A program made the position numbers and the translations under genes. This document shows, piece by piece, positions 2,697 through 53,744 of a stretch of 64,000 nucleotides of DNA; the first letter of the stretch is position 1; each line of letters begins with the position of its first letter. The notes beneath the pieces were generated by a model that did no database searches, was not told where the DNA came from, and saw nothing but the letters and a program-made list of their open reading frames with translations. The DNA lies in IMG/VR virus record IMGVR_UViG_3300033997_000092, positions 124,001-188,000 of that record, one strand, 5' to 3'.

Positions 2697-3851
2697 TTAA
2701 TAAATACGTTGTAAGTTTTTCAAAGTCTTCACACAGGCTTTCATCAAATCACCTGTAAGCTTGGTGCCTGTAAGGTAATAAGACATAGTTTCTGCAAAGA
2801 ATTCTTTGGGATTCGTCATAGCATATTCGCTTGGGTCCATAACAGGAATGCCGATGTCGGTCATTGAAGGCCACAGGCGCTCCAGACGATCTTTGCGTCC
2901 AGTGTCATGCAACAAGTCCAAATCGAAACGATCCAGCTTGTGTACTTTTTTGATGTACGCTATGACTTCTTTTAAAATTACTGATGTGGTGTCATCCGCC
3001 ATCTCTTTTAAGAAATCGCCGATGGAACCATCGTAAGTCATAACTTCTTTGAGAAGACCACGCAGTTTCTTCTCGTCATATTTGCTGACTGTAATGCGCT
3101 TGGCATACAGGCTGAGCCACTTAGCACGGACATCTATTGGAACCATGTGGAACCAAATACCATGTGCTGCTTCGTGCAGTAGTACATACTGAAGATACTT
3201 AGCATCGTCCAACGGAATGTTGTTCAATGACATAACATCTTTACCGCCTTCACCTTCTTTGGTACGGACGTACTTGTAAGTACCTGCCCATTTACCAGCA
3301 CGTGAACGCAGCTCAATATAACCCATACGGTTGATAAAGCCTTCACACTTGTTCTTTTTCAAGATAGTGTAGGCATCAGCAAAAGCACCGACCAAAGTAA
3401 TACGTTCTTCTTTGGTGAATGAGGAACGGTATACACGCAAGTCACACCAGTCTTTGATAGTCAGGGTGCGCTGGTAAGGTTCCACGTTAACATTGAACAC
3501 TTTACCGAATGGAGGATTAGGTCCAAGATTAGCAATGACGTTGTAAGGCTCGACATCGATCTGAACAGAAGTATCGTCTTCTTCAACGCCTTTCTCAAGC
3601 ATGGCACGGCGCTTACCTATAGCAAGAGCCAGATGATTCTTGCCGTTGTACTTAACAACAATGTAGTCATCGGAATCATAAGGTATATGGCGTTCCTGTT
3701 TTTCTTCTACAGGAGCTTTTGCTTTTTTGTCTTTTTTATCAGACTTGGCTGCTTTGTCTTTCTTTTTCTTTTTGTCAGAAACAGGATCAGACTTGCCTTT
3801 GACTTTCTTTTTAGTTTCTTGCCCTTCTGGGGCGCGTAACCTGCTTATCAT
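2697..3851 (-). CDS. Zincin-like metallopeptidase-domain protein with Lys-rich N-terminus
   Basis: LLHEAAHG (HExxH) and YAMTNPKEFFAETMSYY. Confidence 0.6.
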   Translation of the reverse strand: MISRLRAPEGQETKKKVKGKSDPVSDKKKKKDKAAKSDKKDKKAKAPVEEKQERHIPYDSDDYIVVKYNGKNHLALAIGKRRAMLEKGVEEDDTSVQIDVEPYNVIANLGPNPPFGKVFNVNVEPYQRTLTIKDWCDLRVYRSSFTKEERITLVGAFADAYTILKKNKCEGFINRMGYIELRSRAGKWAGTYKYVRTKEGEGGKDVMSLNNIPLDDAKYLQYVLLHEAAHGIWFHMVPIDVRAKWLSLYAKRITVSKYDEKKLRGLLKEVMTYDGSIGDFLKEMADDTTSVILKEVIAYIKKVHKLDRFDLDLLHDTGRKDRLERLWPSMTDIGIPVMDPSEYAMTNPKEFFAETMSYYLTGTKLTGDLMKACVKTLKNLQRIY

Positions 3852-4768: not shown

Positions 4769-4769
4769 A

Positions 4770-5480
4770 TGATCAGTTTGTTTTTATTGTGCGCTGCTGC
4801 GCGAAACGTGAGCGGGCTGGCGAAAAAATCGCCGCGCGGATCAAGATCATTTTCCGATCTTTACTAGCAGGAAATCTATTGTGGATCCATTAACCTATTT
4901 TAACATCTTAGCCAGGTAGATCCTAGATATAGAGGTCGTTTGGTTGCAGTGGAAACCAATAGACAGATCCGTCCCATGATACCGATTGATTCAATTGACC
5001 AGAGCACCAATTGTTATATGTTACTCCGGTGCTCCAGTTCCTAGTGTCCATGTCCTCTTGATCCCAGTGTCTGTGGAATGTCTTTAGTGATCAACTGGAA
5101 TCCAGCTTACCGTTAGGTAACATCGCCTGCGCTCCGGTTACCTAACGATCAGTTGAACTACTGTACCAGGTACTAACTAGCCGGGTGAACAGTTTATCAG
5201 TTGAACTCTGTGAGAGTTAATGGGATACAAGCTGACGAATCTTAATTTACAGTATCCTATTTATAACAATACCATGGTAGTATATGTACATCCAATGCCT
5301 ATAGCCTATACTATCATACAATGCCTATACACTACAGATATACACGTATAATAGCTATAAGTACAATTTAGGGGGTTGCTGCAAAACACCAAGGAAAAAG
5401 CTCGAAAAATCGGAAAACTTTTGACCCAGTTTCTAAAAATAGTCCAAAGAAAAATCGTGTTTTTAGACCTGAAAAAGGCT
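4770..5480. other. Candidate replication origin / regulatory non-coding region
   Basis: ~700 bp without a credible ORF; 10 GATC sites in 4771-5150, inverted and direct repeats, AT-rich tract, A-tracts about one helical turn apart. Confidence 0.45.
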
Positions 5481-5503
5481 AGGAAGATTGCTCAGCCTAG
5501 CCT
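5471..5503 (-). terminator. Intrinsic terminator
   Basis: AGGCTAGG/CCTAGCCT stem followed by T-run on - strand, just after the 5511 stop. Confidence 0.6.
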
Positions 5504-5510
5504 CATAGTT

Positions 5511-5732
5511 TTATTGCTTTTCAAAACGACTACGCATTTTAGCGCCGATTTGTTTCATTAACGATTCGATGCGATCACCGTCACCGTCCTCTACAGCTTT
5601 AGTTAATTGTTCTCCTAAGTCACTGGACACAATTTTCATAAAGCCTGATAACATCAGACCGCGGCCCTTTTTCTTTTTGGGCTTGCGGCGTGACTCAGAT
5701 ACTAACTTATCCAAATGCAGTGTTACTTTCAT
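5511..5732 (-). CDS. Small hypothetical protein
   Basis: 73-aa ORF with GAGG RBS. Confidence 0.65.
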   Translation of the reverse strand: MKVTLHLDKLVSESRRKPKKKKGRGLMLSGFMKIVSSDLGEQLTKAVEDGDGDRIESLMKQIGAKMRSRFEKQ

Positions 5733-5739
5733 ATTTACC

Positions 5740-17536: not shown

Positions 17537-18192
17537 CACAAGAAAATCAATTAAATGGAACTGAATCCGCAGAAGCGGCTGAGTTGCGCCACGCCCGTGA
17601 ATTAATATCAAAGGCCGAAGATGTGATACAAAGACTTCGTGCCAGTTCTGACGTAGCCACTGAGGAGCTTGGCTCTGTTACAAGTAAGCTGCTTGACCTG
17701 CGTGTTGAACATCGCCTTTTAAAGTCCAAGCTTGATGCCACTTTATTCGACAAAGAAGCATTCAAGCAAAAGTGCGACAAGTTAGAAACAACTGTTAAAA
17801 ACTTGGAAGCCGAACTTGTCAAGCGTAGCACTCAGCTATTACGTGCTTCCAAGCGTAACCAAGAATCACTTGAATTATTTTCCAAGTGCGCTGTACTTTT
17901 CGCTTCTTATGTTTCAAGCTCGAAGCTTCCTGTTTATGTACTCACTCGCTTGAAAGAAATAAACTTTCCTAAGCCAAATACGATCCGTCGTGTTGTTGGT
18001 TTGCCTGCAGAAGCGTGTGCTGTAGAAGCTGTTAAGGTCGTGTTTGATCCGTTTAAGTCTATCAACAAAACTCCACCGACATTCACAAATTCAGATATGC
18101 CGATGGACTACTTCTTAAACGCATTTTATCACACCGTGTCTCCTATCGTTATTGAAGATGCGGAAGTGGCTGCTGGCGAGGAAGCCTCGTAA
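17533..18192 (+). CDS. Coiled-coil hypothetical protein
   Basis: 219-aa ORF with heptads. Confidence 0.65.
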   Translation: MTQENQLNGTESAEAAELRHARELISKAEDVIQRLRASSDVATEELGSVTSKLLDLRVEHRLLKSKLDATLFDKEAFKQKCDKLETTVKNLEAELVKRSTQLLRASKRNQESLELFSKCAVLFASYVSSSKLPVYVLTRLKEINFPKPNTIRRVVGLPAEACAVEAVKVVFDPFKSINKTPPTFTNSDMPMDYFLNAFYHTVSPIVIEDAEVAAGEEAS

Positions 18193-19208
18193 TGCTCGAA
18201 GGTAACCTTACTGGTGGCCAAATACAGGAAGTCATGGATAGGCTACTGTATGATGCACTCGCTCCTGTTATCAGATACACTAACGTATTTGACACCCAGC
18301 TTGTGTATCTTTTGGCTACCGTAACAAAGAATAAAAAGCGCAAGGTATGCGCTGTAAGCAGGCCTGAGACAATTGACTTTTTGTGTAAGGCACTTGCTAC
18401 TTCTGACCCAGAAGAAAAAATGATGTACATAAAGAAGTTGAAGATCGAACGCTCGTTCATTCACGTTTTCCTTAAACGGTTTGTTCAGGCGTATAAAGGT
18501 CCAATCTTCTCATTGTACTACCAGTTTATGTCAGACACTAAAAACAGACAGATATATTCCAAGCGCATGAAGCCTTATTTGGCAAGTGTTGGTTGTTCTG
18601 GCCGTTCCGAAATATTCATAGCGATAACTTCCTGTGAATCTAGTCTGACCCGTTTCTACCATTACTTCGACCGGGTCATTTCTCAGTATTACAAGCTGTG
18701 CTACTTAAAAGCAAAAGGCTTGGTTGATACTAATCCGAATAACAACTATGATTTCCATGACCTCGTGCAGAATTTAAGGCAGCGTACCATAACTGCCTTG
18801 AATAAGTACGATGCCTCTAATGGAGCCTTGACATCTTACATCAAGTGGTGGTTATTCAACAGCTTGACTTGTGGTAGTGGCCAGCATGAATACGGTTTGG
18901 CGTACACTGTTCCACAAAACGTAAAAAGAAAGTTGATGCAGTCTGACGGTCTTGGTGTCAACTTCTCTGTTAGTATGGACTCATTATTATCTGAATCTGA
19001 TGATGGTGAGAATTCAAACTTACACAACCTTATAGCTGGTGAGACTCCAGAGCTGGACGATGAAATCGCGTCCATATCGGAACTCAACCGTATGTATATG
19101 TTTGCCAAGAACGCTGACCCTCACGGCATAGCTAGACTGAGTTTAGAGCTGCCTGAAGTATTCAGTCCTAAAGAGTTGGCTAACATGCGTAAGACAACTG
19201 TGTTATAA
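18192..19208 (+). CDS. Phage sigma70-family RNA polymerase sigma factor
   Basis: Region-2-like DLVQNLRQRTITALNKYDASNGALTSYIKWWLFNSL, then YTVP and SVSMD. Confidence 0.7.
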   Translation: MLEGNLTGGQIQEVMDRLLYDALAPVIRYTNVFDTQLVYLLATVTKNKKRKVCAVSRPETIDFLCKALATSDPEEKMMYIKKLKIERSFIHVFLKRFVQAYKGPIFSLYYQFMSDTKNRQIYSKRMKPYLASVGCSGRSEIFIAITSCESSLTRFYHYFDRVISQYYKLCYLKAKGLVDTNPNNNYDFHDLVQNLRQRTITALNKYDASNGALTSYIKWWLFNSLTCGSGQHEYGLAYTVPQNVKRKLMQSDGLGVNFSVSMDSLLSESDDGENSNLHNLIAGETPELDDEIASISELNRMYMFAKNADPHGIARLSLELPEVFSPKELANMRKTTVL

Positions 19209-23344: not shown

Positions 23345-23656
23345 ATGAGTAACATCGCTATTCCAAATCCGTTAAAGCGTACAGAAATCAATGCAAAGAT
23401 TGCCTTAGCTCGTTCCCAGATTGAAGGTCTGGTAGCTTACGCCGAAGCAAACTATTCTGTGTCCTGTACTGAAGCCAAAGCGTTGCTGGCCCGTGTAGAT
23501 AAAGGTGATAAAATCTCCGATTACTTGCACAAGCTCAGTGACTTGGTTACAATGCGTGACCATTTAACTGAAGTCATCCACAACGCAGCCCTTGAAGATG
23601 CAAAGCACTTCACTGAGTTGTCAGGCCGTGTGGACAACTTCGTACTTCCCAAGTAA
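23345..23656 (+). CDS. Hypothetical protein
   Basis: 103-aa ORF, AAGGAG RBS. Confidence 0.65.
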   Translation: MSNIAIPNPLKRTEINAKIALARSQIEGLVAYAEANYSVSCTEAKALLARVDKGDKISDYLHKLSDLVTMRDHLTEVIHNAALEDAKHFTELSGRVDNFVLPK

Positions 23657-23710
23657 GTTGTCTCTACTTAGTAATTTATATCTGTAAATAAACAAGTATA
23701 GATTACTAAC

Positions 23711-23787
23711 GGCCCCTTAGCTCAGTTGGTTAGAGCACTCCCCTCATAAGGGATTGGTCTCCAGTTCAAATCTGGAAGGGGCCACCA
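23711..23787 (+). tRNA. tRNA with CAU anticodon, most likely tRNA-Ile2 (lysidine, reads AUA)
   Basis: GGCCCCT/AGGGGCC acceptor stem as in enterobacterial ileX, D arm, CT-CAT-AA loop, TTCAAAT T loop, encoded ACCA; lacks initiator features. Confidence 0.9.
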
Positions 23788-23801
23788 CTCAAGAGGCAAC
23801 T

Positions 23802-24197
23802 ATGTCTACATTGAAATTTATTACTGATCGTGGAATTGTTGATGGTTCCAAAGCAACGTCAAACGATTTTCTAGGTTCTGTTCGTACAACAGTTAATCCT
23901 GAAGTAGATGTGGAGTATGTACTCCATGCAGCAAAGAAGTTCGGGTGGAACACACTTGTTGTTAAGTCATCCACTTCTCCTGTAGTGATTGAAACTACTA
24001 TCAGCGCTCCTGGTAATTTGAACAACGCAATCTGGATAGATTTATCTCAATGTCCTAACGCTCCAGATACTGTAAACTATGATACAGAACTTCCAGCAGG
24101 CAAAGCAGTTATGTATGCGTGGGAACACCCTGTTACTGCTTTCCGTTTTAAATCGACAGCTCCCTTTGACATCGAATTCTGCTCTAAGCACGACTAA
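23802..24197 (+). CDS. Beta-rich hypothetical protein (131 aa)
   Basis: ATG 23802 with GAGG RBS directly after the tRNA; the track start at 23754 lies inside the tRNA. Confidence 0.7.
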   Translation: MSTLKFITDRGIVDGSKATSNDFLGSVRTTVNPEVDVEYVLHAAKKFGWNTLVVKSSTSPVVIETTISAPGNLNNAIWIDLSQCPNAPDTVNYDTELPAGKAVMYAWEHPVTAFRFKSTAPFDIEFCSKHD

Positions 24198-24685
24198 ATT
24201 CCTCGGGAGGGAATGGCCCCGAAAAGGCACACACGGCGGAACTTGTTAGTTTTCTCCGTATCTGATTGGTTCCTTGCATGAGCCGTGTGTGCCCCAGTAG
24301 GCCAACTGTTTATAGACCTGTTTCCTGTCACTTCGTAGACTTACTTGTCTCTGGTTGCTTTAGTAGCGACCAGCAAGATTTTGTTGCTACCGCATATAGC
24401 ACAAGTCTACTGCATAGAGAATGTAGCTGCCCTTATCGCTGCGCTTTGGACCATTCTTTATCGCATGAAAGCCTTATCCAATACAGCAAAATGAATCAGC
24501 CGCATATCGCCTTCGCAGGACTTATCCAGCTCACGGGCAGCAGCTTGAATATTTTTGTTGTGGGTACGTCACGACAGCACTAATGCCTGCTGTAGGCGAG
24601 CGCCTAATTTCTGGATTCGCGTACTCCAGAGCTGTGGCAGGGAACAGGACTATAAGCAGTTACGCAGTTCATAAGGAACAAACGT

Positions 24686-24850
24686 ATGCACGATATTTTT
24701 ATTTCGCTGCTTGTAATCATCATATTGGTTAACTGGTGTGATTACAAGTTATTCCATCGCCCTACGAGGAGACGGAACGCTACGGGGATCATAAATGCCT
24801 CGTTCCGTTGGGCGGAATGGCCGGCAACCTATTTCACTCCACGTATATGA
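24686..24850 (+). CDS. Possible 54-aa peptide with hydrophobic N-terminus embedded in the structured RNA
   Basis: AAGGA RBS; MHDIFISLLVIIILVNWCDYKLFHRPTRRR... Confidence 0.35.
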   Translation: MHDIFISLLVIIILVNWCDYKLFHRPTRRRNATGIINASFRWAEWPATYFTPRI

Positions 24851-25197
24851 CTAGCGCCTCGGACATCTTATAAATGAATCCTCAAACCAGTTAACTGGAT
24901 GTCTGATACTCTGGGCGTGATGACAAAATACAGAACGTACACCAAGAATTCGATTTTTACAAGACGGTCTCCTGTGCATTGTAACATACATTGGGTGTGG
25001 TGCACAGGAGAACCTAGAATTTATAGAGCAGGACACTGAGTACGCGCCGTCCACGTTCGGCTGCTGAGTACATATTACGCCCGTCGGCTTTCGTTTCCTC
25101 CAAGTTTCTGAGGCCGACAACTCGCTCAGTGTTCTGCACTATAGGTTCTTTGGTCAGGATCTATAGCATAGCTTTACCACAGTTTATTTGCTTTTTC

Positions 25198-25224
25198 GGC
25201 GATCTTCGGGTCGCCATTTTTTTT
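25198..25224 (+). terminator. Intrinsic terminator with C(UUCG)G tetraloop
   Basis: GGCGATC-TTCG-GGTCGCC-A-T8. Confidence 0.9.
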
Positions 25225-25234
25225 GGAGAATTGT

Positions 25235-25861
25235 ATGCTTATTGTATTTGAAGGAATGGACGGTTCAGGTAAATCAGAACAAAGTTCTAGGCTTGTACAA
25301 TATTTCAATCGCATCGGACTGAAAGCTGTGCTATTACGTGAACCTGGCTCTACACCTCTAGGCGAAAATGTCCGTGATATAGTAAAGTTCCGTCCAAACA
25401 ACATGCAGATTAGTGTTTGCGCCGAAACACTGTTAATCTTTGCTTCGCGCGCCCAGCTCGTAATAGATATAAAACAGTATTTGGAAGATGGATATATTGT
25501 TGTACTTGATCGTTGGGTATTTTCTACCTACGTGTATCAGTGCATTGCTAAAGGTGCTCCCGCAGAGGACATCGTAAACCTTTTCTATATCTCTAAGGCA
25601 AATACCGTTGTTCCTGATTTGATCATATACATGGAAAACTCTAGTTCTGTTGTCAAGCGTCCTGATGATAAACTGGAGCAAGACACCGTCGATAAAAGAG
25701 ACATTATGCTTGAAGCTTACCGCAAGCTATTCAAACAAGGCCATGACTCAAAGCTTATGGGTACATTGTTTAAGCCGTACATCGATTGCCCAATTACTCA
25801 TATCGATATAGCCGGTTACCGTATTGAACAAACTGAAGAAAAAATCAAAGCATTATTTTGA
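25235..25861 (+). CDS. tmk: Thymidylate kinase
   Basis: LIVFEGMDGSGKS, REPG, LDRW..ST.VYQ, PDL. Confidence 0.9.
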   Translation: MLIVFEGMDGSGKSEQSSRLVQYFNRIGLKAVLLREPGSTPLGENVRDIVKFRPNNMQISVCAETLLIFASRAQLVIDIKQYLEDGYIVVLDRWVFSTYVYQCIAKGAPAEDIVNLFYISKANTVVPDLIIYMENSSSVVKRPDDKLEQDTVDKRDIMLEAYRKLFKQGHDSKLMGTLFKPYIDCPITHIDIAGYRIEQTEEKIKALF

Positions 25862-26204: not shown

Positions 26205-26261
26205 CTCTGTTATCCGTTGCATAAATAGGCTATTGACCTACGACTCTAACCCTTGTATAAT
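26205..26261 (+). promoter_or_regulatory. Early sigma70-type promoter with conserved upstream box (copy 1)
   Basis: CTCTGTTATCCGTTGCATAAATAGG..TTGACC-N17-TATAAT. Confidence 0.85.
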
Positions 26262-48115: not shown

Positions 48116-49429
48116 ATGAGCAAACTGACTGGAAACTCGGTCCAAGCTTTGATTGCTGGATTAGAGTGTGTTAAATCCGTTGTAAATACTGCACAAGCCA
48201 CACCTCAACTATTGCACTCAGAGGAACGTGCGCTTCAATCCCTTTCATCATGCACTGAAGGCTTAAACAGTTTTCTCAGTGTGTCCCGTGAGCCAGCGGC
48301 TCGCCAGTTACGCAAAGAAGTCAAGGTGTTACACAACACGCTTGCGTCACTGGCATCAGGCATAGAAAATGAGGACTTAGATCCTGAGGAATTCTTAGAA
48401 TCCTTGACAGGTGAAGTCAACAATTTAGCCTCATCGATTGAAATCGTAGGCTTATCTATGGCAAATGAATCAGACATATCAGACGCGGAATTGGGTATCG
48501 AATCCGAAAGCGCATCTACCGAACTGTCTGACTTCAAAAAACTCCCAGACCAAGAAGTTGATGTTGCTGATGCAGTTAACACTGTCCGCAAACTAAATCG
48601 CTACGACAGCTACCGTAATGCTTTGGCGCGCAAGCTCCAGAAGCCGTTCTCTGTTCAGCCTGTTGATCTGCCTATTGTCGTCAGGTTCCAGAACAACCGA
48701 CTCAACATGCCTGCGGTACTTGAATCTGTTTTTCCTGGACGTGTTGACCCTGTCGGTGTTACAGGAAAGACTGCTGCCGATATAGGTATTGTGTTGCAGA
48801 ACCAGATTGTTGTTCAGTTCTCAAAGACCTACGCTATGGAAATCGCACAGGAACTTATGAACGAAGACGACACTGCTGAACGCCTGTCGAATTCACGTAC
48901 TGTACTCAACAACTTGCGTAAACGGGAACGCACACTGAATAAAGAGCTTGAGAAGCTTGCCGAAGAGGAAGCAGCACTTGGCAAAAAGATCTCAAAGATT
49001 ACCCGTACTCGTATCGAAAAACAACGCGCCCAGATATTTGCAAACTTAGCAAAGCTGGAAGATCCTATCAAACAGAATATGGACCGCGTAAAAGAAGCAC
49101 AGTCTGTCAAACGCAGCAAAGCCAAAGTCGCCCTGAAGCCTGAAGCTGCCTACCTGACACGACTGAATATGTTTTTGGAAGAATTGTCTGCACGTGGTAA
49201 GAACTACACCACGCTCAGCAATACTTTCTTGACCAGTCCTGCGAACAGTGACTTGGTTCTTGCGTGGTTAGTTCCTACCGCTGCATATACCAAGCTTGCA
49301 AATCTCAGCGGCTCTAACACTGCGGTAACATCTTGGGGATTACCGTGGAGTGGACGTAAAGCTGTTGTTCGTAGTACCGTTGACATTCCTGACGGTGTTT
49401 TCTTACCTACTAAGGTACGCAAGCATTAA
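48116..49429 (+). CDS. Hypothetical coiled-coil protein, possibly virion/head-associated
   Basis: 437 aa; CTAATTT motif upstream. Confidence 0.7.
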   Translation: MSKLTGNSVQALIAGLECVKSVVNTAQATPQLLHSEERALQSLSSCTEGLNSFLSVSREPAARQLRKEVKVLHNTLASLASGIENEDLDPEEFLESLTGEVNNLASSIEIVGLSMANESDISDAELGIESESASTELSDFKKLPDQEVDVADAVNTVRKLNRYDSYRNALARKLQKPFSVQPVDLPIVVRFQNNRLNMPAVLESVFPGRVDPVGVTGKTAADIGIVLQNQIVVQFSKTYAMEIAQELMNEDDTAERLSNSRTVLNNLRKRERTLNKELEKLAEEEAALGKKISKITRTRIEKQRAQIFANLAKLEDPIKQNMDRVKEAQSVKRSKAKVALKPEAAYLTRLNMFLEELSARGKNYTTLSNTFLTSPANSDLVLAWLVPTAAYTKLANLSGSNTAVTSWGLPWSGRKAVVRSTVDIPDGVFLPTKVRKH

Positions 49430-50777: not shown

Positions 50778-51956
50778 ATGGCTAAGCTTGACCCAAGATC
50801 GCTTTCCCATTTTATCTGTGATACTCTCCGTGTTAAATATGGGACTCAACAGTTTAAAAACTTAATGAGTTCCACGTTGTTGTACATCTGTACTTCGACA
50901 AACATCAAAGTGTACCACAGAACACTCAAAGACAACGCGGACTTTTCCGTGTTAGATATTACTCCTGCTCAGTTCAGAATGGAACTTATGGATTCAGGTT
51001 ACGTTACTGCTAACCTTAAGTTCTATTCAACTTTCCTTAGCCTGCTTACTGCAAATGCTTTGGATAAGTTTGTGGCTGAGGAGCTTTGTTACAAGTACAA
51101 AATCTGTCCTTGTGATGCAAAGCCTATCTTCAACTTTATTGTTGAACTCAAAGGATTCCGCACAGAGATTCGCAAATTCGCTAAGTCTCGCGGAATAAAG
51201 TCACGCGATTATTCGTTTACCAGATTACAGGAAATCAAAGATACGTTTTCTTCGATGTTGCCTGAGCTGGAAAAACACATTCGCAGAACAACAAACAAGA
51301 AGCTGGACTTCATTCGCAAATATTTCAATATGTCCCGCGAGGAGCTTTGGTCTGATTTAGTAGTGCATACGCTACGTGCCTACTACAAATCGGTACCGAA
51401 TGACTTCAGTGAACTCAAACAGTTGAACTACTTGCGTACCGCAGTAAATAACCGCGCACTCAACCTAATCGAAAGTCATGTCAGCCAGAAGCGCCAGCGT
51501 TTGGTTAACATGGGTTCAGACAACAAAGAAGGTGCGAAGTTCGTCCTTATGGTGGAAGCCGAATCGCAAATGACACTTAACAGTGAAGGCGAATCGCAGT
51601 CTCTTGAAACACTGGGTGAGGGTGAGTTTTGGTTAAACGGAGCTGAGAGTCAGGATTTTACACTGAGCATAGATTCACTGCGTTCTAAGTACCGCAATAC
51701 AAAACGTGGTGTTGTTCTTTCGGTGTTTGCAGGATTTGAGGTTCCACGTCTGACAACATGGATGCGTAAGCGCCGTATGTTACGTGCGGTAGATAAAAAC
51801 TCACAGGACATTATGGAGACCAAAGACATCGGGGAAATGTGCAGCATCCTCGCAGAATTTTTAAATGTCAAAGTCGATGTCATTCACACAGCTTTAGGGA
51901 GATTTGGACATGAACTTGGTTTCTTGCGCCGTGGAGGTAAAGCAGATGCCTTCTGA
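50778..51956 (+). CDS. Divergent sigma-factor-like protein
   Basis: AAGGAG RBS; EELWSDLVVHTLRAY...NYLRTAVNNRALNLIESHVSQKRQR resembles sigma region 2. Confidence 0.45.
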   Translation: MAKLDPRSLSHFICDTLRVKYGTQQFKNLMSSTLLYICTSTNIKVYHRTLKDNADFSVLDITPAQFRMELMDSGYVTANLKFYSTFLSLLTANALDKFVAEELCYKYKICPCDAKPIFNFIVELKGFRTEIRKFAKSRGIKSRDYSFTRLQEIKDTFSSMLPELEKHIRRTTNKKLDFIRKYFNMSREELWSDLVVHTLRAYYKSVPNDFSELKQLNYLRTAVNNRALNLIESHVSQKRQRLVNMGSDNKEGAKFVLMVEAESQMTLNSEGESQSLETLGEGEFWLNGAESQDFTLSIDSLRSKYRNTKRGVVLSVFAGFEVPRLTTWMRKRRMLRAVDKNSQDIMETKDIGEMCSILAEFLNVKVDVIHTALGRFGHELGFLRRGGKADAF

Positions 51957-52371: not shown

Positions 52372-53744
52372 TGTCTAAGTCCTTGTACTCGCCGAATGGT
52401 GAAATGGACCTGATAAAGACACTGACTAATCCCGAGACATCAGATAAATCCCGTGCTGCTGTCTTGGGTAAGTTGGATCAATCGTTATTTAATGCTCCTG
52501 CTACGTTAGCCGCTTTTCGCAGAATTCAAACTCTTGCACAGAAGAGGCAACGTGTCCCTATATGGGACGATCTTATCGATGATCCTTCATTCGATGCAGA
52601 TGTCAGGGCTGAGTTAGAGGAATCAGATCGAGAACCTATCCGCTCTAAGAAACGGCTTACTACCGTAATCGAGCGTCTTGATAAGTACAGGAAGTTGCGT
52701 GAACTGTTACAGATCACTGAAACGTCCATCGCTTATTTTGACAGAGAGGATAAGTTAGATCCAGATGAACTAGCCGATAACATATCCAACAAGTTGGCTC
52801 ATGTCAGGAAGAAACATTCCACAGAACAAAAAATATGGAACATGGGGGTAAAGAGTAATACATCAAAGTTTATCAGAAATACTTTGAACAAGGGCAAAGA
52901 GAAACAACTACTTACCGGGTTCAAGGATTATGATGATCGCAATGGTGGATTGCCTGACTCTGGTGTATTCATACTTGCAGGTACTACATCTGGCGGTAAA
53001 TCAGTTGTAGCAAACAACTTGCTGTACAATCTTGTTACAAACAACCGCCGTTTGTCAGGTGTTAAGATAACACTTGAAATGACCGCCGAACAAGAACTTA
53101 AACGTATCATGTCGATGGTCACAGGTATTCCTTTCTGGCGTATCAAGCAAAACAAACTTAATGCCGCTGAGAAAGAAAGCATAGTCCGTAAGATGGCTAA
53201 GTTCAATAAGAAGATCAAGAAACGTAAGTGTCAGATGTCTTGGGTAAGTCCTGAAGGCTCCATGACTATCGATGACGTCTTGAATATGTGTAAGCCTTTC
53301 GGCTACAACGTAATCTTGTTGGACTACATCAGCTTGCTTGAAGGAGTTGATGATGATAACCAGTGGCGTATGTTGAGTGCTATTGCCCGTAAAGCAAAAG
53401 TATATGCAACAGAAACCAAAACCTTGTTTGTTATTCTATGTCAGTTGGATGGCAAAACTAACCAGTTGCGTTATTCTCAAGGTGTTAAAGAACATGCTGA
53501 CGTAATGTGGGCCTGGAATTACACTGACGAAGAACAACGTGCCTTGAAAGTTTTACCAATCAAAGTAGTTAAAGCGCGTGATGGTGAGTTGTTCAACTTA
53601 GACTTGAGCGAACACTTTGAAGTTATGCGTGTTGGTGATATGGATTCTGATTCAGGTCCTAAGTTTAGTAGTAAAATGCGTAAACCTAAGTCTGGCTCCA
53701 AAGAGGATAATGAAGAAGGAAACGACGGCTATGTGATGTCGTAA
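52371..53744 (+). CDS. dnaB: DnaB-like replicative helicase
   Basis: TGFKDYD...GG, LAGTTSGGKS, TLEM, LDYISL, LCQL, LRYSQGVKEHAD, KARDGE. Confidence 0.9.
   Translation: MSKSLYSPNGEMDLIKTLTNPETSDKSRAAVLGKLDQSLFNAPATLAAFRRIQTLAQKRQRVPIWDDLIDDPSFDADVRAELEESDREPIRSKKRLTTVIERLDKYRKLRELLQITETSIAYFDREDKLDPDELADNISNKLAHVRKKHSTEQKIWNMGVKSNTSKFIRNTLNKGKEKQLLTGFKDYDDRNGGLPDSGVFILAGTTSGGKSVVANNLLYNLVTNNRRLSGVKITLEMTAEQELKRIMSMVTGIPFWRIKQNKLNAAEKESIVRKMAKFNKKIKKRKCQMSWVSPEGSMTIDDVLNMCKPFGYNVILLDYISLLEGVDDDNQWRMLSAIARKAKVYATETKTLFVILCQLDGKTNQLRYSQGVKEHADVMWAWNYTDEEQRALKVLPIKVVKARDGELFNLDLSEHFEVMRVGDMDSDSGPKFSSKMRKPKSGSKEDNEEGNDGYVMS

Follow-up and report, generated by a model that had tools for sequence, protein, structure and literature searches.

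Bacterial and phage RNAs of about a kilobase with an elaborate fold are very rare, being limited to GOLLD, ROOL, OLE and a few others, and they have repeatedly turned out to be unusual, as ribozymes, RNP cores or RNA-only nanocages. GOLLD (Rfam RF02032) is a very large (over 800 nt) ornate RNA encoded by phages and prophages, often beside tRNA genes, with a well-conserved 3' part, a more variable 5' part and an unknown function; GOLLD env-38 lies downstream of a Met-tRNA (PMC12286853). ROOL (RF03087) is likewise a large ornate RNA of phages and prophages found near tRNA islands, with no known protein partner (PMC12286853; PMC5737381). We analysed a window of 64,000 nucleotides from the IMG/VR record IMGVR_UViG_3300033997_000092, which belongs to a 261-kb jumbo phage distantly related to PaBG, and found that its positions 24198-25224 (+) encode an elaborately folded RNA of about 1,027 nt. 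This adds a candidate to the short list of giant phage RNAs of unknown function, although the evidence that it is transcribed is weak.

The comparison with GOLLD rests on size, ornateness and context alone. The RNA is phage-encoded, exceeds 800 nt, lies 410 nt downstream of a tRNA with anticodon CAU, and combines a nearly invariant 3' domain with variable arms in its 5' domain. It nevertheless gives no match to the GOLLD covariance model (gathering score 150 bits) at E up to 10, either in window positions 23600-25400 or in the whole genome and four relatives. No shared sequence motif is known, a protein gene separates the tRNA from the RNA, and a small ORF led by a Shine-Dalgarno sequence is embedded in it. 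There is also no match to the ROOL model (gathering score 99.1 bits), although one of the searches was not validated on a known ROOL, since its control genomes gave no match either; the RNA described here is nearly twice as long as ROOL, and no pseudoknots have been established in it. Palindromic tetranucleotides occur in 3 of 9 invariant unpaired runs, which is the chance expectation. Among the 4,227 covariance models of Rfam 15, including group I and group II introns, RNase P, tmRNA, 6S, HEARO and OLE, only the tRNA matched at gathering score, and at E up to 10 only weak chance matches appeared, to snoR22 and, on the terminator, to SorY and TarB. ARAGORN found no tmRNA.

The stretch is the longest ORF-free one of the genome and has the highest GC of such stretches, 0.47 against 0.434 for the genome (0.46-0.48 against 0.41-0.44 in the flanks). 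No ORF over 105 codons lies in 24198-25234, and all six frames carry at least 10 stops of all three kinds, which, together with ten 1-nt indels among relatives, rejects an alternative genetic code or a hidden long ORF. The minimum free energy of the + strand is -358.1 kcal/mol against -297.6 +/- 9.2 for dinucleotide shuffles (z -6.6), an excess of 60 kcal/mol, while the - strand gives z -5.6. Sixteen coding control windows of the same length show an excess of only -18 +/- 10 kcal/mol, with a mean z of -2.6 and at most -5.3, and other ORF-poor gaps of the genome give -0.6 to -3.75 kcal per 100 nt, against -5.9 here. In isolated 200-nt windows, however, the region is not an outlier; the signal comes from long-range helices and whole domains.

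All 11 helices proposed in the sequence-only reading exist, with the proposed numbers of pairs, G.U pairs and mismatches, and ten of them are also present in the comparative consensus structure. The exception, 24426-32/24535-41, lies in a hypervariable arm and is not kept in relatives. The further inference of that reading, a possibly undescribed large phage ncRNA selected on the + strand and probably co-transcribed with the tRNA, is supported by the Rfam searches, the folding energy and the syntenic homologues, with the reservations that the embedded ORF leaves 'non-coding' unsettled, that the tRNA is dispensable, and that direct evidence of a transcript is only a weak metatranscriptome hint.

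The probable start region of the transcription unit is a phage promoter-like motif, CTGTAAATA, at 23682-23690 (+). It has 9 copies in the window against 1.5 expected, mostly just upstream of genes, and is kept at the same syntenic spot in every close relative, with none inside the RNA; its promoter function is inferred. The only tRNA of the genome follows at 23711-23787 (+), supported by Rfam RF00005 at 67 bits and called Met(CAT) by ARAGORN; the sequence-only reading had named it tRNA-Ile2. The tRNA is present in the relatives designated L013-L015, L028, L045 and L047, but absent in L011 and L012, which keep the RNA and carry an HNH gene in place of the tRNA. ORF131 (23802-24197, +) is a conserved protein with no Pfam or PHROG family that always precedes the RNA slot; its homologues are 79-98% identical in close kin and about 40% identical in the L044 and L047 clades, again next to a structured gap, and its AF2 model is unusable (pLDDT 55). 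The RNA itself has no mapped 5' end, but nucleotide conservation starts at the ORF131 stop codon. It ends in an intrinsic terminator at 25198-25224 (+), GGCGAUCUUCGGGUCGCC followed by U8, with a 7-bp G+C-rich stem that is invariant, a loop CUUCGG region and a U tract 8-11 long in relatives. The thymidylate kinase gene tmk (25235-25861, +; Pfam PF02223, E 2.7e-27) starts 10 nt after the terminator and has no promoter motif of its own.

At the 5' end, the hairpin UUCCU-CGGGA-GGGAA (24199-24213) has a second copy of its motif, UUCCG-UUGGG-CGGAA followed by UGGCC, at 24803-24822. In the relative L029 its pairs 4 and 5 change from C-G, U.G to U.G, C-G, so that both stay paired, while L015 changes only the loop. 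A long-range helix between 24200-24212 and 24759-24770, predicted by RNAalifold, is doubtful, since L015 and L029 break it whereas the local hairpin explains their changes. Domain H1 (24214-24304; z -3.7) consists of an outer helix UGGCC/GGCCA enclosing the long hairpin 24226-24293, with 12 perfect pairs, an inner helix and the invariant bulge UUGCAUGA; all changes in relatives are G-C to G.U or A-U to G.U. Domain D1 (24305-24661; z -5.8 on +, -4.5 on -) is a five-arm junction closed by a 27-28-bp helix, 24304-24331 with 24634-24661, with one A.A mismatch. This helix shows compensatory changes at 24321/24644 (U-A to C-G in L016) and 24328/24637 (U.G to A-U in the L015 group), and L015 lacks the 8 nt AAGCAGUU, the outermost part of the 3' arm.

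Within D1, the Y-shaped arm 24335-24410 comprises a closing helix GUAGACUU/AAGUCUAC, in which 24335/24410 changes from G-C to A-U in the L015 group, a conserved hairpin at 24385-24401 and a hypervariable hairpin V1 (about 24344-24377), whose sequence is replaced in L013, L014 and L015 but still folds as a hairpin on the conserved CUUG/CAAG base. The hairpin arm 24411-24465 shows compensatory changes at 24422/24453 (U-A to C-G in L013) and 24414/24461, and the central pair of its inner mini-hairpin goes U.U, G.U, G-C across relatives. The second hypervariable arm, V2 (24475-24566), stands on the conserved base UAUCC/GG(G/A)UA and exists in two unrelated sequence versions of 100-116 nt, each folding into a long imperfect hairpin; identity to L013 and L015 drops to 40% here. 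The two remaining hairpins, 24567-24598 and 24609-24631, are nearly invariant, with one-sided G.U changes only.

Downstream of D1, a hairpin at 24661-24686 holds the Shine-Dalgarno-like AAGGAAC just before the AUG of the 54-codon ORF (24686-24850, beginning MHDIFISLLVIIILVNWC), and its pair 24664/24683 changes from G-C to U-A in L014. Inside this ORF, the hairpin 24709-24749 (CUUGUAAUCA/UGAUUACAAG plus an inner helix, loop UUAA) is invariant, and the hairpin 24771-24809, formed by helix 24772-79/24801-08 extended by 4 pairs, shows a G-C to A-U change at 24784/24801 in L015 and L028. The long hairpin domain 24840-24919, around helix 24859-67/24898-906, carries two adjacent compensatory pairs, 24859/24906 (U-A to G-C) and 24860/24905 (C-G to U-A), in L014, L015 and L028, and 24868/24897 changes from U.G to A-U in L028. 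In the hairpin 24966-25014 (helix 24968-79/25000-11 with an apical mini-hairpin), 24978/25001 changes from A-U to G-C in L015. A predicted pairing of 24936-24948 with the tmk start region is not supported in L015. Domain D2 (25016-25149; z -5.7 on +, -2.7 on -), a three-way junction closed by a 25-bp helix with one A.A mismatch and tandem U.G, is the most conserved part, 97-100% identical, and is followed by a short hairpin at 25151-25179 that is invariant in all relatives. The idea that D1 and D2 are duplicates of each other is rejected, since a covariance model of the 3' domain does not hit D1 and only short shared motifs exist, UUUAUAGA/ACUAUA and the 20-nt direct repeat. A CsrA-type GGA sponge is also rejected, as GGA is only 1.7-fold enriched.

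Five distinct syntenic relatives show that the stretch is more conserved than its flanking genes, whose synonymous sites are near saturation. The core is 90.5% identical to L015 where the flanks are 73-77% (dS above 1), 94.5% to L014 where the flanks are 80-83%, and 96.3% to L013 where tmk is 88%. Thirteen core pairs have double compensatory changes, against 0-1 in six slid controls and 5.9 +/- 1.4 (maximum 11) in 300 column shuffles; broken pair types number 16, against 30-36 in the controls, and 98.5% of cells are canonical pairs. These counts come without a phylogeny-aware test, for which five full-length sequences are too few, and recombination, which occurs here (L011 is a mosaic), could inflate the apparent conservation. 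Single changes at Watson-Crick pairs give G.U 28 times and A.C once on the + strand, whereas on the - strand's own best structure the counts are A.C 15 and G.U 3, and the consensus energy is -317 on + and -268 kcal/mol on -.

Distant-mode blastn of the stretch against 50,697 phage records gave no match; nhmmer and blastn against loci of distant kin, and against whole records of PaBG, NCTB and three IMG/VR relatives, gave only chance or terminator matches; and exact conserved blocks found nothing in IMG/VR or in GTDB genomes. Covariance models of the 3' domain and of the 5' hairpin domain gave no significant hit in distant kin and no second copy in the phage's own genome, and a scan of JGI metagenomes with the ORF131 profile found only a near-copy of the same phage. 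Nevertheless, phages with about 80% identical UvsX carry unrelated but equally structured RNAs of 0.35-1.4 kb in the same slot. The 1.4-kb gap of L044 has z -9.6, the L047 gap z -10.6, and the L005 and L004 gaps z -7, although the neighbours of the gaps in L004 and L005 show no homology to ORF131, and no relatives of L005 were found in which the conservation of its gap might be seen. The L044 clade has a 25-bp helix in the same position as that of D2, with the same base GAAUUUA/UAGGUUC and all inner pairs changed but still paired, and L045 differs from L044 at 5 sites in the 1,414-nt gap and at 14 sites in the 660-nt tmk.

We consider it somewhat more likely than not that 24198-25224 (+) encodes a multi-domain RNA whose fold, not a protein or a DNA site, is what selection preserves. 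The stretch has no conserved long ORF, it evolves several times more slowly than the synonymous sites of its flanking genes, and its helices are kept through compensatory and wobble changes that work only on the + strand. We infer that it is transcribed from the motif at 23682 as the distal part of the unit tRNA(CAU)-ORF131-RNA and is freed from the tRNA and the ORF131 message by ordinary host processing. The two 25-28-bp helices, each with a single internal mismatch and enclosing a whole folded domain, are long enough to be RNase III substrates and recall the processing stems of rRNA operons and the RNase III sites of phage T7, through which folded RNAs are generally released, but this resemblance is one of geometry only. 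There is no direct proof of a discrete transcript: the only true metatranscriptome examined gave a single 157-nt contig, covering 25022-25168; four metatranscriptomes contain 6-8% of the words of the RNA stretch and none is listed for the tmk flank, but the higher sequence conservation of the RNA could explain this; and the possible RNA libraries that contain the stretch also contain the flanking genes and probably include phage DNA. Our best guess is that the RNA acts in the infected cell as a stably folded particle, either an RNA scaffold, an RNP or a self-assembly, as GOLLD and ROOL RNAs of other phages are thought to act; the embedded 54-codon ORF with a paired ribosome-binding site may give it a second, coding role.

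A less likely but unresolved alternative is that the RNA is chiefly a highly structured, translationally gated message for a 54-residue membrane peptide, its long folded 5' and 3' parts controlling stability, processing and ribosome access. This would be the design of type I toxin mRNAs such as hok and of RNA-gated phage lysis genes. The ORF 24686-24850 is the only one open in all five distinct relatives, with AAGGAAC 7 nt before the ATG, a hydrophobic N-terminal segment and then a basic stretch; its Shine-Dalgarno sequence sits in a hairpin supported by a compensatory change, no indel falls inside it, and pN/pS is about 0.35 in comparisons with L015 (0.34-2.6 overall). The sequence-unrelated RNA of the L044 clade also has an SD+ATG 65-codon ORF with a hydrophobic N-terminus behind a hairpin holding GGAG. 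On the other hand, variable sites are spread 7/8/11 over codon positions, pN/pS is 1.0 and 2.6 against L014 and L013, and the stop codon changed independently in L011/L012 and in L028. Furthermore, 84% of the conserved RNA lies outside the ORF, with D2 170-300 nt downstream of the stop, and segment 24703-24740 shows no substitutions at all across relatives, not even synonymous ones, which points to constraint at the RNA level. The peptide has no Pfam match (including Hok) at E up to 10 and no Atlas relative, and no such ORF exists in the L047, L004 or L005 gaps. The RNA is three to five times longer than type I toxin mRNAs, and no antisense RNA gene has been shown; one sigma-70-like site lies on the - strand at 24747-24719, but promoter-like sites are no more frequent than in shuffles.

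It is improbable that the stretch is a giant cis-acting leader controlling read-through of the terminator into tmk and the genes after it, by attenuation or processive antitermination. The lack of a promoter motif for tmk, the conserved terminator and spacing, and the position of the next strong promoter-like site at 26233 would be in keeping with such a role. However, known leaders and antiterminator RNAs are tens to a few hundred nucleotides long, and nothing explains conserved multi-branch domains 600-1,000 nt upstream; in L047 a promoter motif lies between the structured RNA's terminator and tmk, so that there the two are separate units, and no alternative pairing with the terminator stem was found in the consensus fold. 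Still less likely is an action of the palindromes at the DNA level, as a replication origin, a recombination hot spot or a protein-binding array. The stretch does lie in the replication and recombination module (sigma factor, SSB, UvsX), its helices also fold on the - strand, contigs of relatives often break inside it, and mosaicism is seen at the locus. Yet a DNA cruciform or a duplex binding site would be strand-symmetric, unlike the tolerance of G.U observed here, and there are no iterons, no AT-rich unwinding tract (GC is raised instead) and no turn in GC skew. A neutral spacer or decayed gene folded by chance, for which the unexceptional 200-nt windows and the one coding control at z -5.3 might speak, is already contradicted by the conservation above both flanking genes in three independent comparisons, the compensatory changes, the strand asymmetry and a folding excess that is the largest among all controls and other ORF-poor gaps tested.

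A bolder possibility, which we put forward only tentatively, is that this RNA is the founding member of an undescribed class of giant phage RNAs that occupy a fixed slot (tRNA(CAU)-ORF131 family-RNA-tmk) in a PaBG-related jumbo-phage group, diversify so fast between lineages that only the base of one helix stays recognizable, and work as RNA machines or assemblies, possibly together with ORF131 and an embedded membrane peptide. That would be a new, experimentally approachable relative of the GOLLD/ROOL problem. The RNA is longer than most of its kind, is under stronger constraint than the protein genes around it, and sits in a simple, conserved transcription unit. In related phages the slot between the ORF131 family gene and tmk is always filled by a large folded RNA even when the sequence is replaced, which argues for a general need of these phages rather than a lineage oddity. 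The locus offers a second, independent system for asking why large phages place giant RNAs next to tRNA genes, and it may also be an example of a giant RNA that doubles as the message for a membrane peptide.

The record, of which bases 124001-188000 form the window, is a 261,032-bp phage sequence with direct terminal repeats, and its sigma factor, SSB and UvsX genes place it as a distant relative of Pseudomonas phage PaBG, phage NCTB, Lu11 and the Erwinia jumbo phages; the SSB is 45% identical to that of PaBG over 61% of its length. On the + strand the locus comprises a promoter-like motif CTGTAAATA (23682-23690), a tRNA(CAU) gene (23711-23787), which is the only tRNA of the genome, ORF131 (23802-24197), which belongs to no known family, an ORF-free stretch (24198-25234) and the thymidylate kinase gene tmk (25235-25861). 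The ORF-free stretch contains no ORF above 105 codons, and every frame carries at least 10 stop codons of all three kinds, so a recoded gene is excluded. It is the longest ORF-free stretch of the genome and has the highest GC content of such stretches, 0.46-0.48 against 0.41-0.44 in the flanks.

Each of the 11 helices proposed in the sequence-only reading exists exactly as described. The minimum free energy (MFE) of the + strand, -358.1 kcal/mol, lies 60.5 kcal/mol below the mean of dinucleotide shuffles (z -6.6), while the - strand gives z -5.6. This genome folds better than shuffles everywhere, and we therefore used its own background as the control: sixteen coding windows of 1,025 nt show an excess of 18 +/- 10 kcal/mol and at most 44, and four other ORF-poor gaps show 0.6-3.75 kcal per 100 nt, against 5.9 here. 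The second largest ORF-poor gap of the window (4769-5739, 971 nt, GC 0.41) is moderately structured, with z -3.3 on the + strand and -4.5 on the - strand. Some coding stretches also fold far better than shuffles: the 1,025-nt window at 52400-53424 gives z -5.3, and 200-nt windows give z -6.9/-6.2 at 49401, -7.7 at 51001, -6.9 on the - strand at 3601 and -6.4 at 19201, the last of which lies on the promoter motif and the SSB gene start; these may be local regulatory hairpins or terminators. Within the stretch itself single 200-nt windows are not outliers, and the excess resides in domains closed by long-range helices, D1 (24305-24661, z -5.8) and D2 (25016-25149, z -5.7).

Nucleotide searches for relatives found nothing, whereas searches with the flanking proteins recovered five distinct full-length syntenic copies: the window itself with its near-copy L017; L011, which is identical over this stretch to L012; L013, a contig (JAIENT010001014.1 of NCBI assembly GCA_019751115.1) binned in a Pararheinheimera/Rheinheimera MAG; L014; and L015. 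Partial copies, L016 and L028-L032, were also found. The sequences come from subsurface, wastewater, drinking-water and freshwater samples, and the gap length is kept at 1,037-1,059 nt. Phage contigs of this group are deposited inside bacterial MAG assemblies, among them L013 and L044 (JBNHEI010000006.1 of GCA_050043615.1, 251 kb), and the Pararheinheimera/Rheinheimera label of L013 is the only hint about the host.

Against L015 the flanking genes are 73-77% identical in nucleotides, with synonymous sites saturated, while the RNA core is 90.5% identical. The corresponding figures against L014 are 80-83% and 94.5%, and against L013 tmk is 88% and the core 96.3% identical. A 60-nt sliding comparison shows the RNA, and above all 25025-25204, as the best-conserved segment of the neighbourhood. 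Conservation alone is not proof, however, since recombination occurs at the locus: in L011 and L012 ORF131 is only 82% identical to that of the window while ORF103 and tmk are 100% identical, and an HNH endonuclease gene (189 aa; L011 3468-4037, L012 626-1195) occupies the place of the tRNA(CAU) between ORF103 and ORF131, which indicates mosaic exchange. Two patches of the RNA are hypervariable, V1 (about 24344-24377) and V2 (24475-24566). In both of them the sequence is replaced, yet each version forms a hairpin standing on an unchanged helix base, which is the behaviour of expansion arms in structured RNAs.

RNAalifold gives 307 consensus pairs at -317 kcal/mol on the + strand, against -268 kcal/mol on the - strand, and outside the hypervariable patches 98.5% of pair cells are canonical. 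Thirteen pairs show changes on both sides with pairing kept, for example 24859/24906 (U-A to G-C) next to 24860/24905 (C-G to U-A), 24321/24644 (U-A to C-G), 24335/24410 (G-C to A-U) and 24978/25001 (A-U to G-C). The controls give 0-1 such pairs when partners are slid by 1-3 columns, and 5.9 +/- 1.4 (maximum 11) in 300 column shuffles; broken pair types number 16, against 30-36 in the controls. With five sequences these are counts and not a phylogeny-aware test. Single substitutions at Watson-Crick pairs produce G.U 28 times and A.C once, whereas the - strand, when given its own optimal consensus structure, shows A.C 15 times and G.U 3 times. A DNA-level palindrome would be symmetric in this respect, so selection acts on the + strand RNA.

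The architecture begins with a 5' hairpin (24199-24213) and domain H1 (24214-24304), followed by domain D1 (24305-24661), in which a 27-28-bp closing helix with one A.A mismatch surrounds five arms, two of them variable. A hairpin holding AAGGAAC (24661-24686) leads into a central part with four hairpins (24686-25014), after which come domain D2 (25016-25149), with a 25-bp closing helix carrying one A.A mismatch around a three-way junction, a short hairpin (25151-25179) and the terminator (25198-25224). One of the helices of the sequence-only reading, 24426-32/24535-41, is not conserved, and two long-range pairings proposed by RNAalifold, of the 5' end with 24759-24770 and of 24936-24948 with the tmk start, are not supported by the variants. 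The pentamer TATAG occurs 5 times in the RNA (24311, 24395, 25022, 25140 and 25162), against 0.78 per kb in the window, and both long closing helices carry UUUAUAG-A / A-CUAUA around an A.A mismatch; in L015 the mismatch of the first helix becomes a U-A pair. The invariant loop CGCGUAC of a D1 hairpin (24618-24624) is perfectly complementary to the invariant GUACGCG at the D2 junction (25041-25047), which could be a tertiary or intermolecular contact, although about one such 7-mer match is expected by chance and neither side varies. UUGGUUAACUGG and the perfect 12-nt palindrome CCAGUUAACUGG, at 24725-24736 and 24885-24896, lie in two different hairpins (a direct and an inverted repeat). Variants in L013-L015 fall in the central UUAA and fit the local hairpin, and the L014 change breaks the alternative long-range pairing.

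The motif CTGTAAAYA occurs 9 times in the window (1780, 12389, 19218, 23682, 30487, 35571, 40532, 59065 and 61164) against 1.5 expected, and 18 times in the genome. Most copies sit in short intergenic spaces just upstream of genes, and the motif is also found in the relatives L004, L005 and L047. It resembles a phage-specific promoter of the T4 late TATAAATA type, perhaps read by the phage's own sigma factor (18192-19208). The copy upstream of the RNA is kept at the same spot in every close relative, and none lies inside the RNA. L011 and L012, which lack the tRNA, keep the motif, ORF131 and the RNA, and the likely unit is therefore promoter - (tRNA) - ORF131 - RNA - terminator. Public sequencing runs give only weak support for transcription. 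Libraries labelled 'metagenomic RNA-Seq' cover the flanking genes as well and probably contain phage DNA. One genuine wastewater metatranscriptome has a 157-nt contig at depth 24 on 25022-25168 and nothing on the flanking genes. Four metatranscriptomes from three studies hold 6-8% of the RNA's words and none of them is listed for the equally long tmk flank, but the higher conservation of the RNA could explain this.

Among known families, Rfam 15 gives only the tRNA at gathering scores and only chance-level hits at E up to 10, and direct searches of the genome and four relatives with GOLLD (RF02032) and ROOL (RF03087) give nothing. A survey of IMG/VR structured RNAs reports motifs averaging 67 nt and required three IMG/VR matches, which this RNA lacks (PMC10690425). 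We found no description of it.

What occupies this position in other phages? A profile of ORF131 found homologues at about 40% identity in phages whose UvsX is 77-83% identical to that of the window. In three of them, L044-L046, the slot between the ORF131 homologue and tmk is a 1,414-nt ORF-free stretch with z -9.6 on the + strand and -7.0 on the - strand, against -1.45 for the UvsX coding control, and in a fourth, L047, the slot is 407 nt with z -10.6. L045 differs from L044 at 5 sites in the 1,414-nt gap and at 14 sites in the 660-nt tmk. tRNA-Met(CAT) precedes ORF131 there too, although in L044 the tRNA upstream of the ORF131 homologue (4904-4981) scores only 35.9 bits in Rfam and is missed by ARAGORN, whereas the otherwise nearly identical L045 has a normal tRNA-Met(CAT); 22 of the 59 differences between the two contigs fall in this 175-nt spacer. 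These RNAs show no sequence similarity to that of the window, with one exception. The best hit of the D2 model in L044 lies at the 3' end of its gap and is a 25-bp helix with the same base, GAAUUUA/UAGGUUC including the tandem U.G, in which every inner pair is different but still paired; this pair of motifs is expected about 0.0007 times by chance in that gap. More distant kin, L005, L004 and NCTB, also have structured ORF-free gaps after UvsX and the tRNA, with z -6 to -7, although homology there is not shown.

What could be the role of this RNA? The data establish a conserved, + strand, multi-domain RNA of about 1.03 kb, but they do not establish what it does. We favour, with moderate confidence, a stand-alone folded RNA acting as a particle, scaffold or RNP. 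This rests on analogy with GOLLD and ROOL, which are also giant, ornate, phage-borne, next to tRNA genes and of unknown function (PMC12286853), and it fits the fact that 84% of the conserved sequence, including the most conserved domain, lies outside the small ORF.

A second, more tentative possibility, which might also be a second function, is that the RNA is a gated message for a membrane peptide. Window 24686-24850 is the only ORF open in all relatives; it has 54 codons, an SD 7 nt upstream, and a hydrophobic N-terminal segment followed by a basic stretch. The SD hairpin has a compensatory change, and the unrelated RNA of the L044 clade also carries an SD-led 65-codon hydrophobic ORF behind a hairpin. 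The evidence for translation is nevertheless mixed: variable sites fall 7/8/11 on the three codon positions, pN/pS is 0.34-0.39 against L015 but 1.0 and 2.6 against L014 and L013, the stop codon changed in two lineages, a 38-nt run inside the ORF has no substitution at all, and no family is recognised.

It is unlikely that the stretch is a leader controlling read-through into tmk. The gene begins 10 nt after the terminator's U tract with no promoter-like site between them (25224-25235), and its expression seems to depend on terminator read-through, but in L047 a CTGTAAATA motif sits between the terminator and tmk. A DNA-level element, which we consider very doubtful, and chance, which we regard as all but untenable, are contradicted by the strand asymmetry and the conservation. 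The RNA is not a member of any described family, but a new family among the giant ornate RNAs known from phages.
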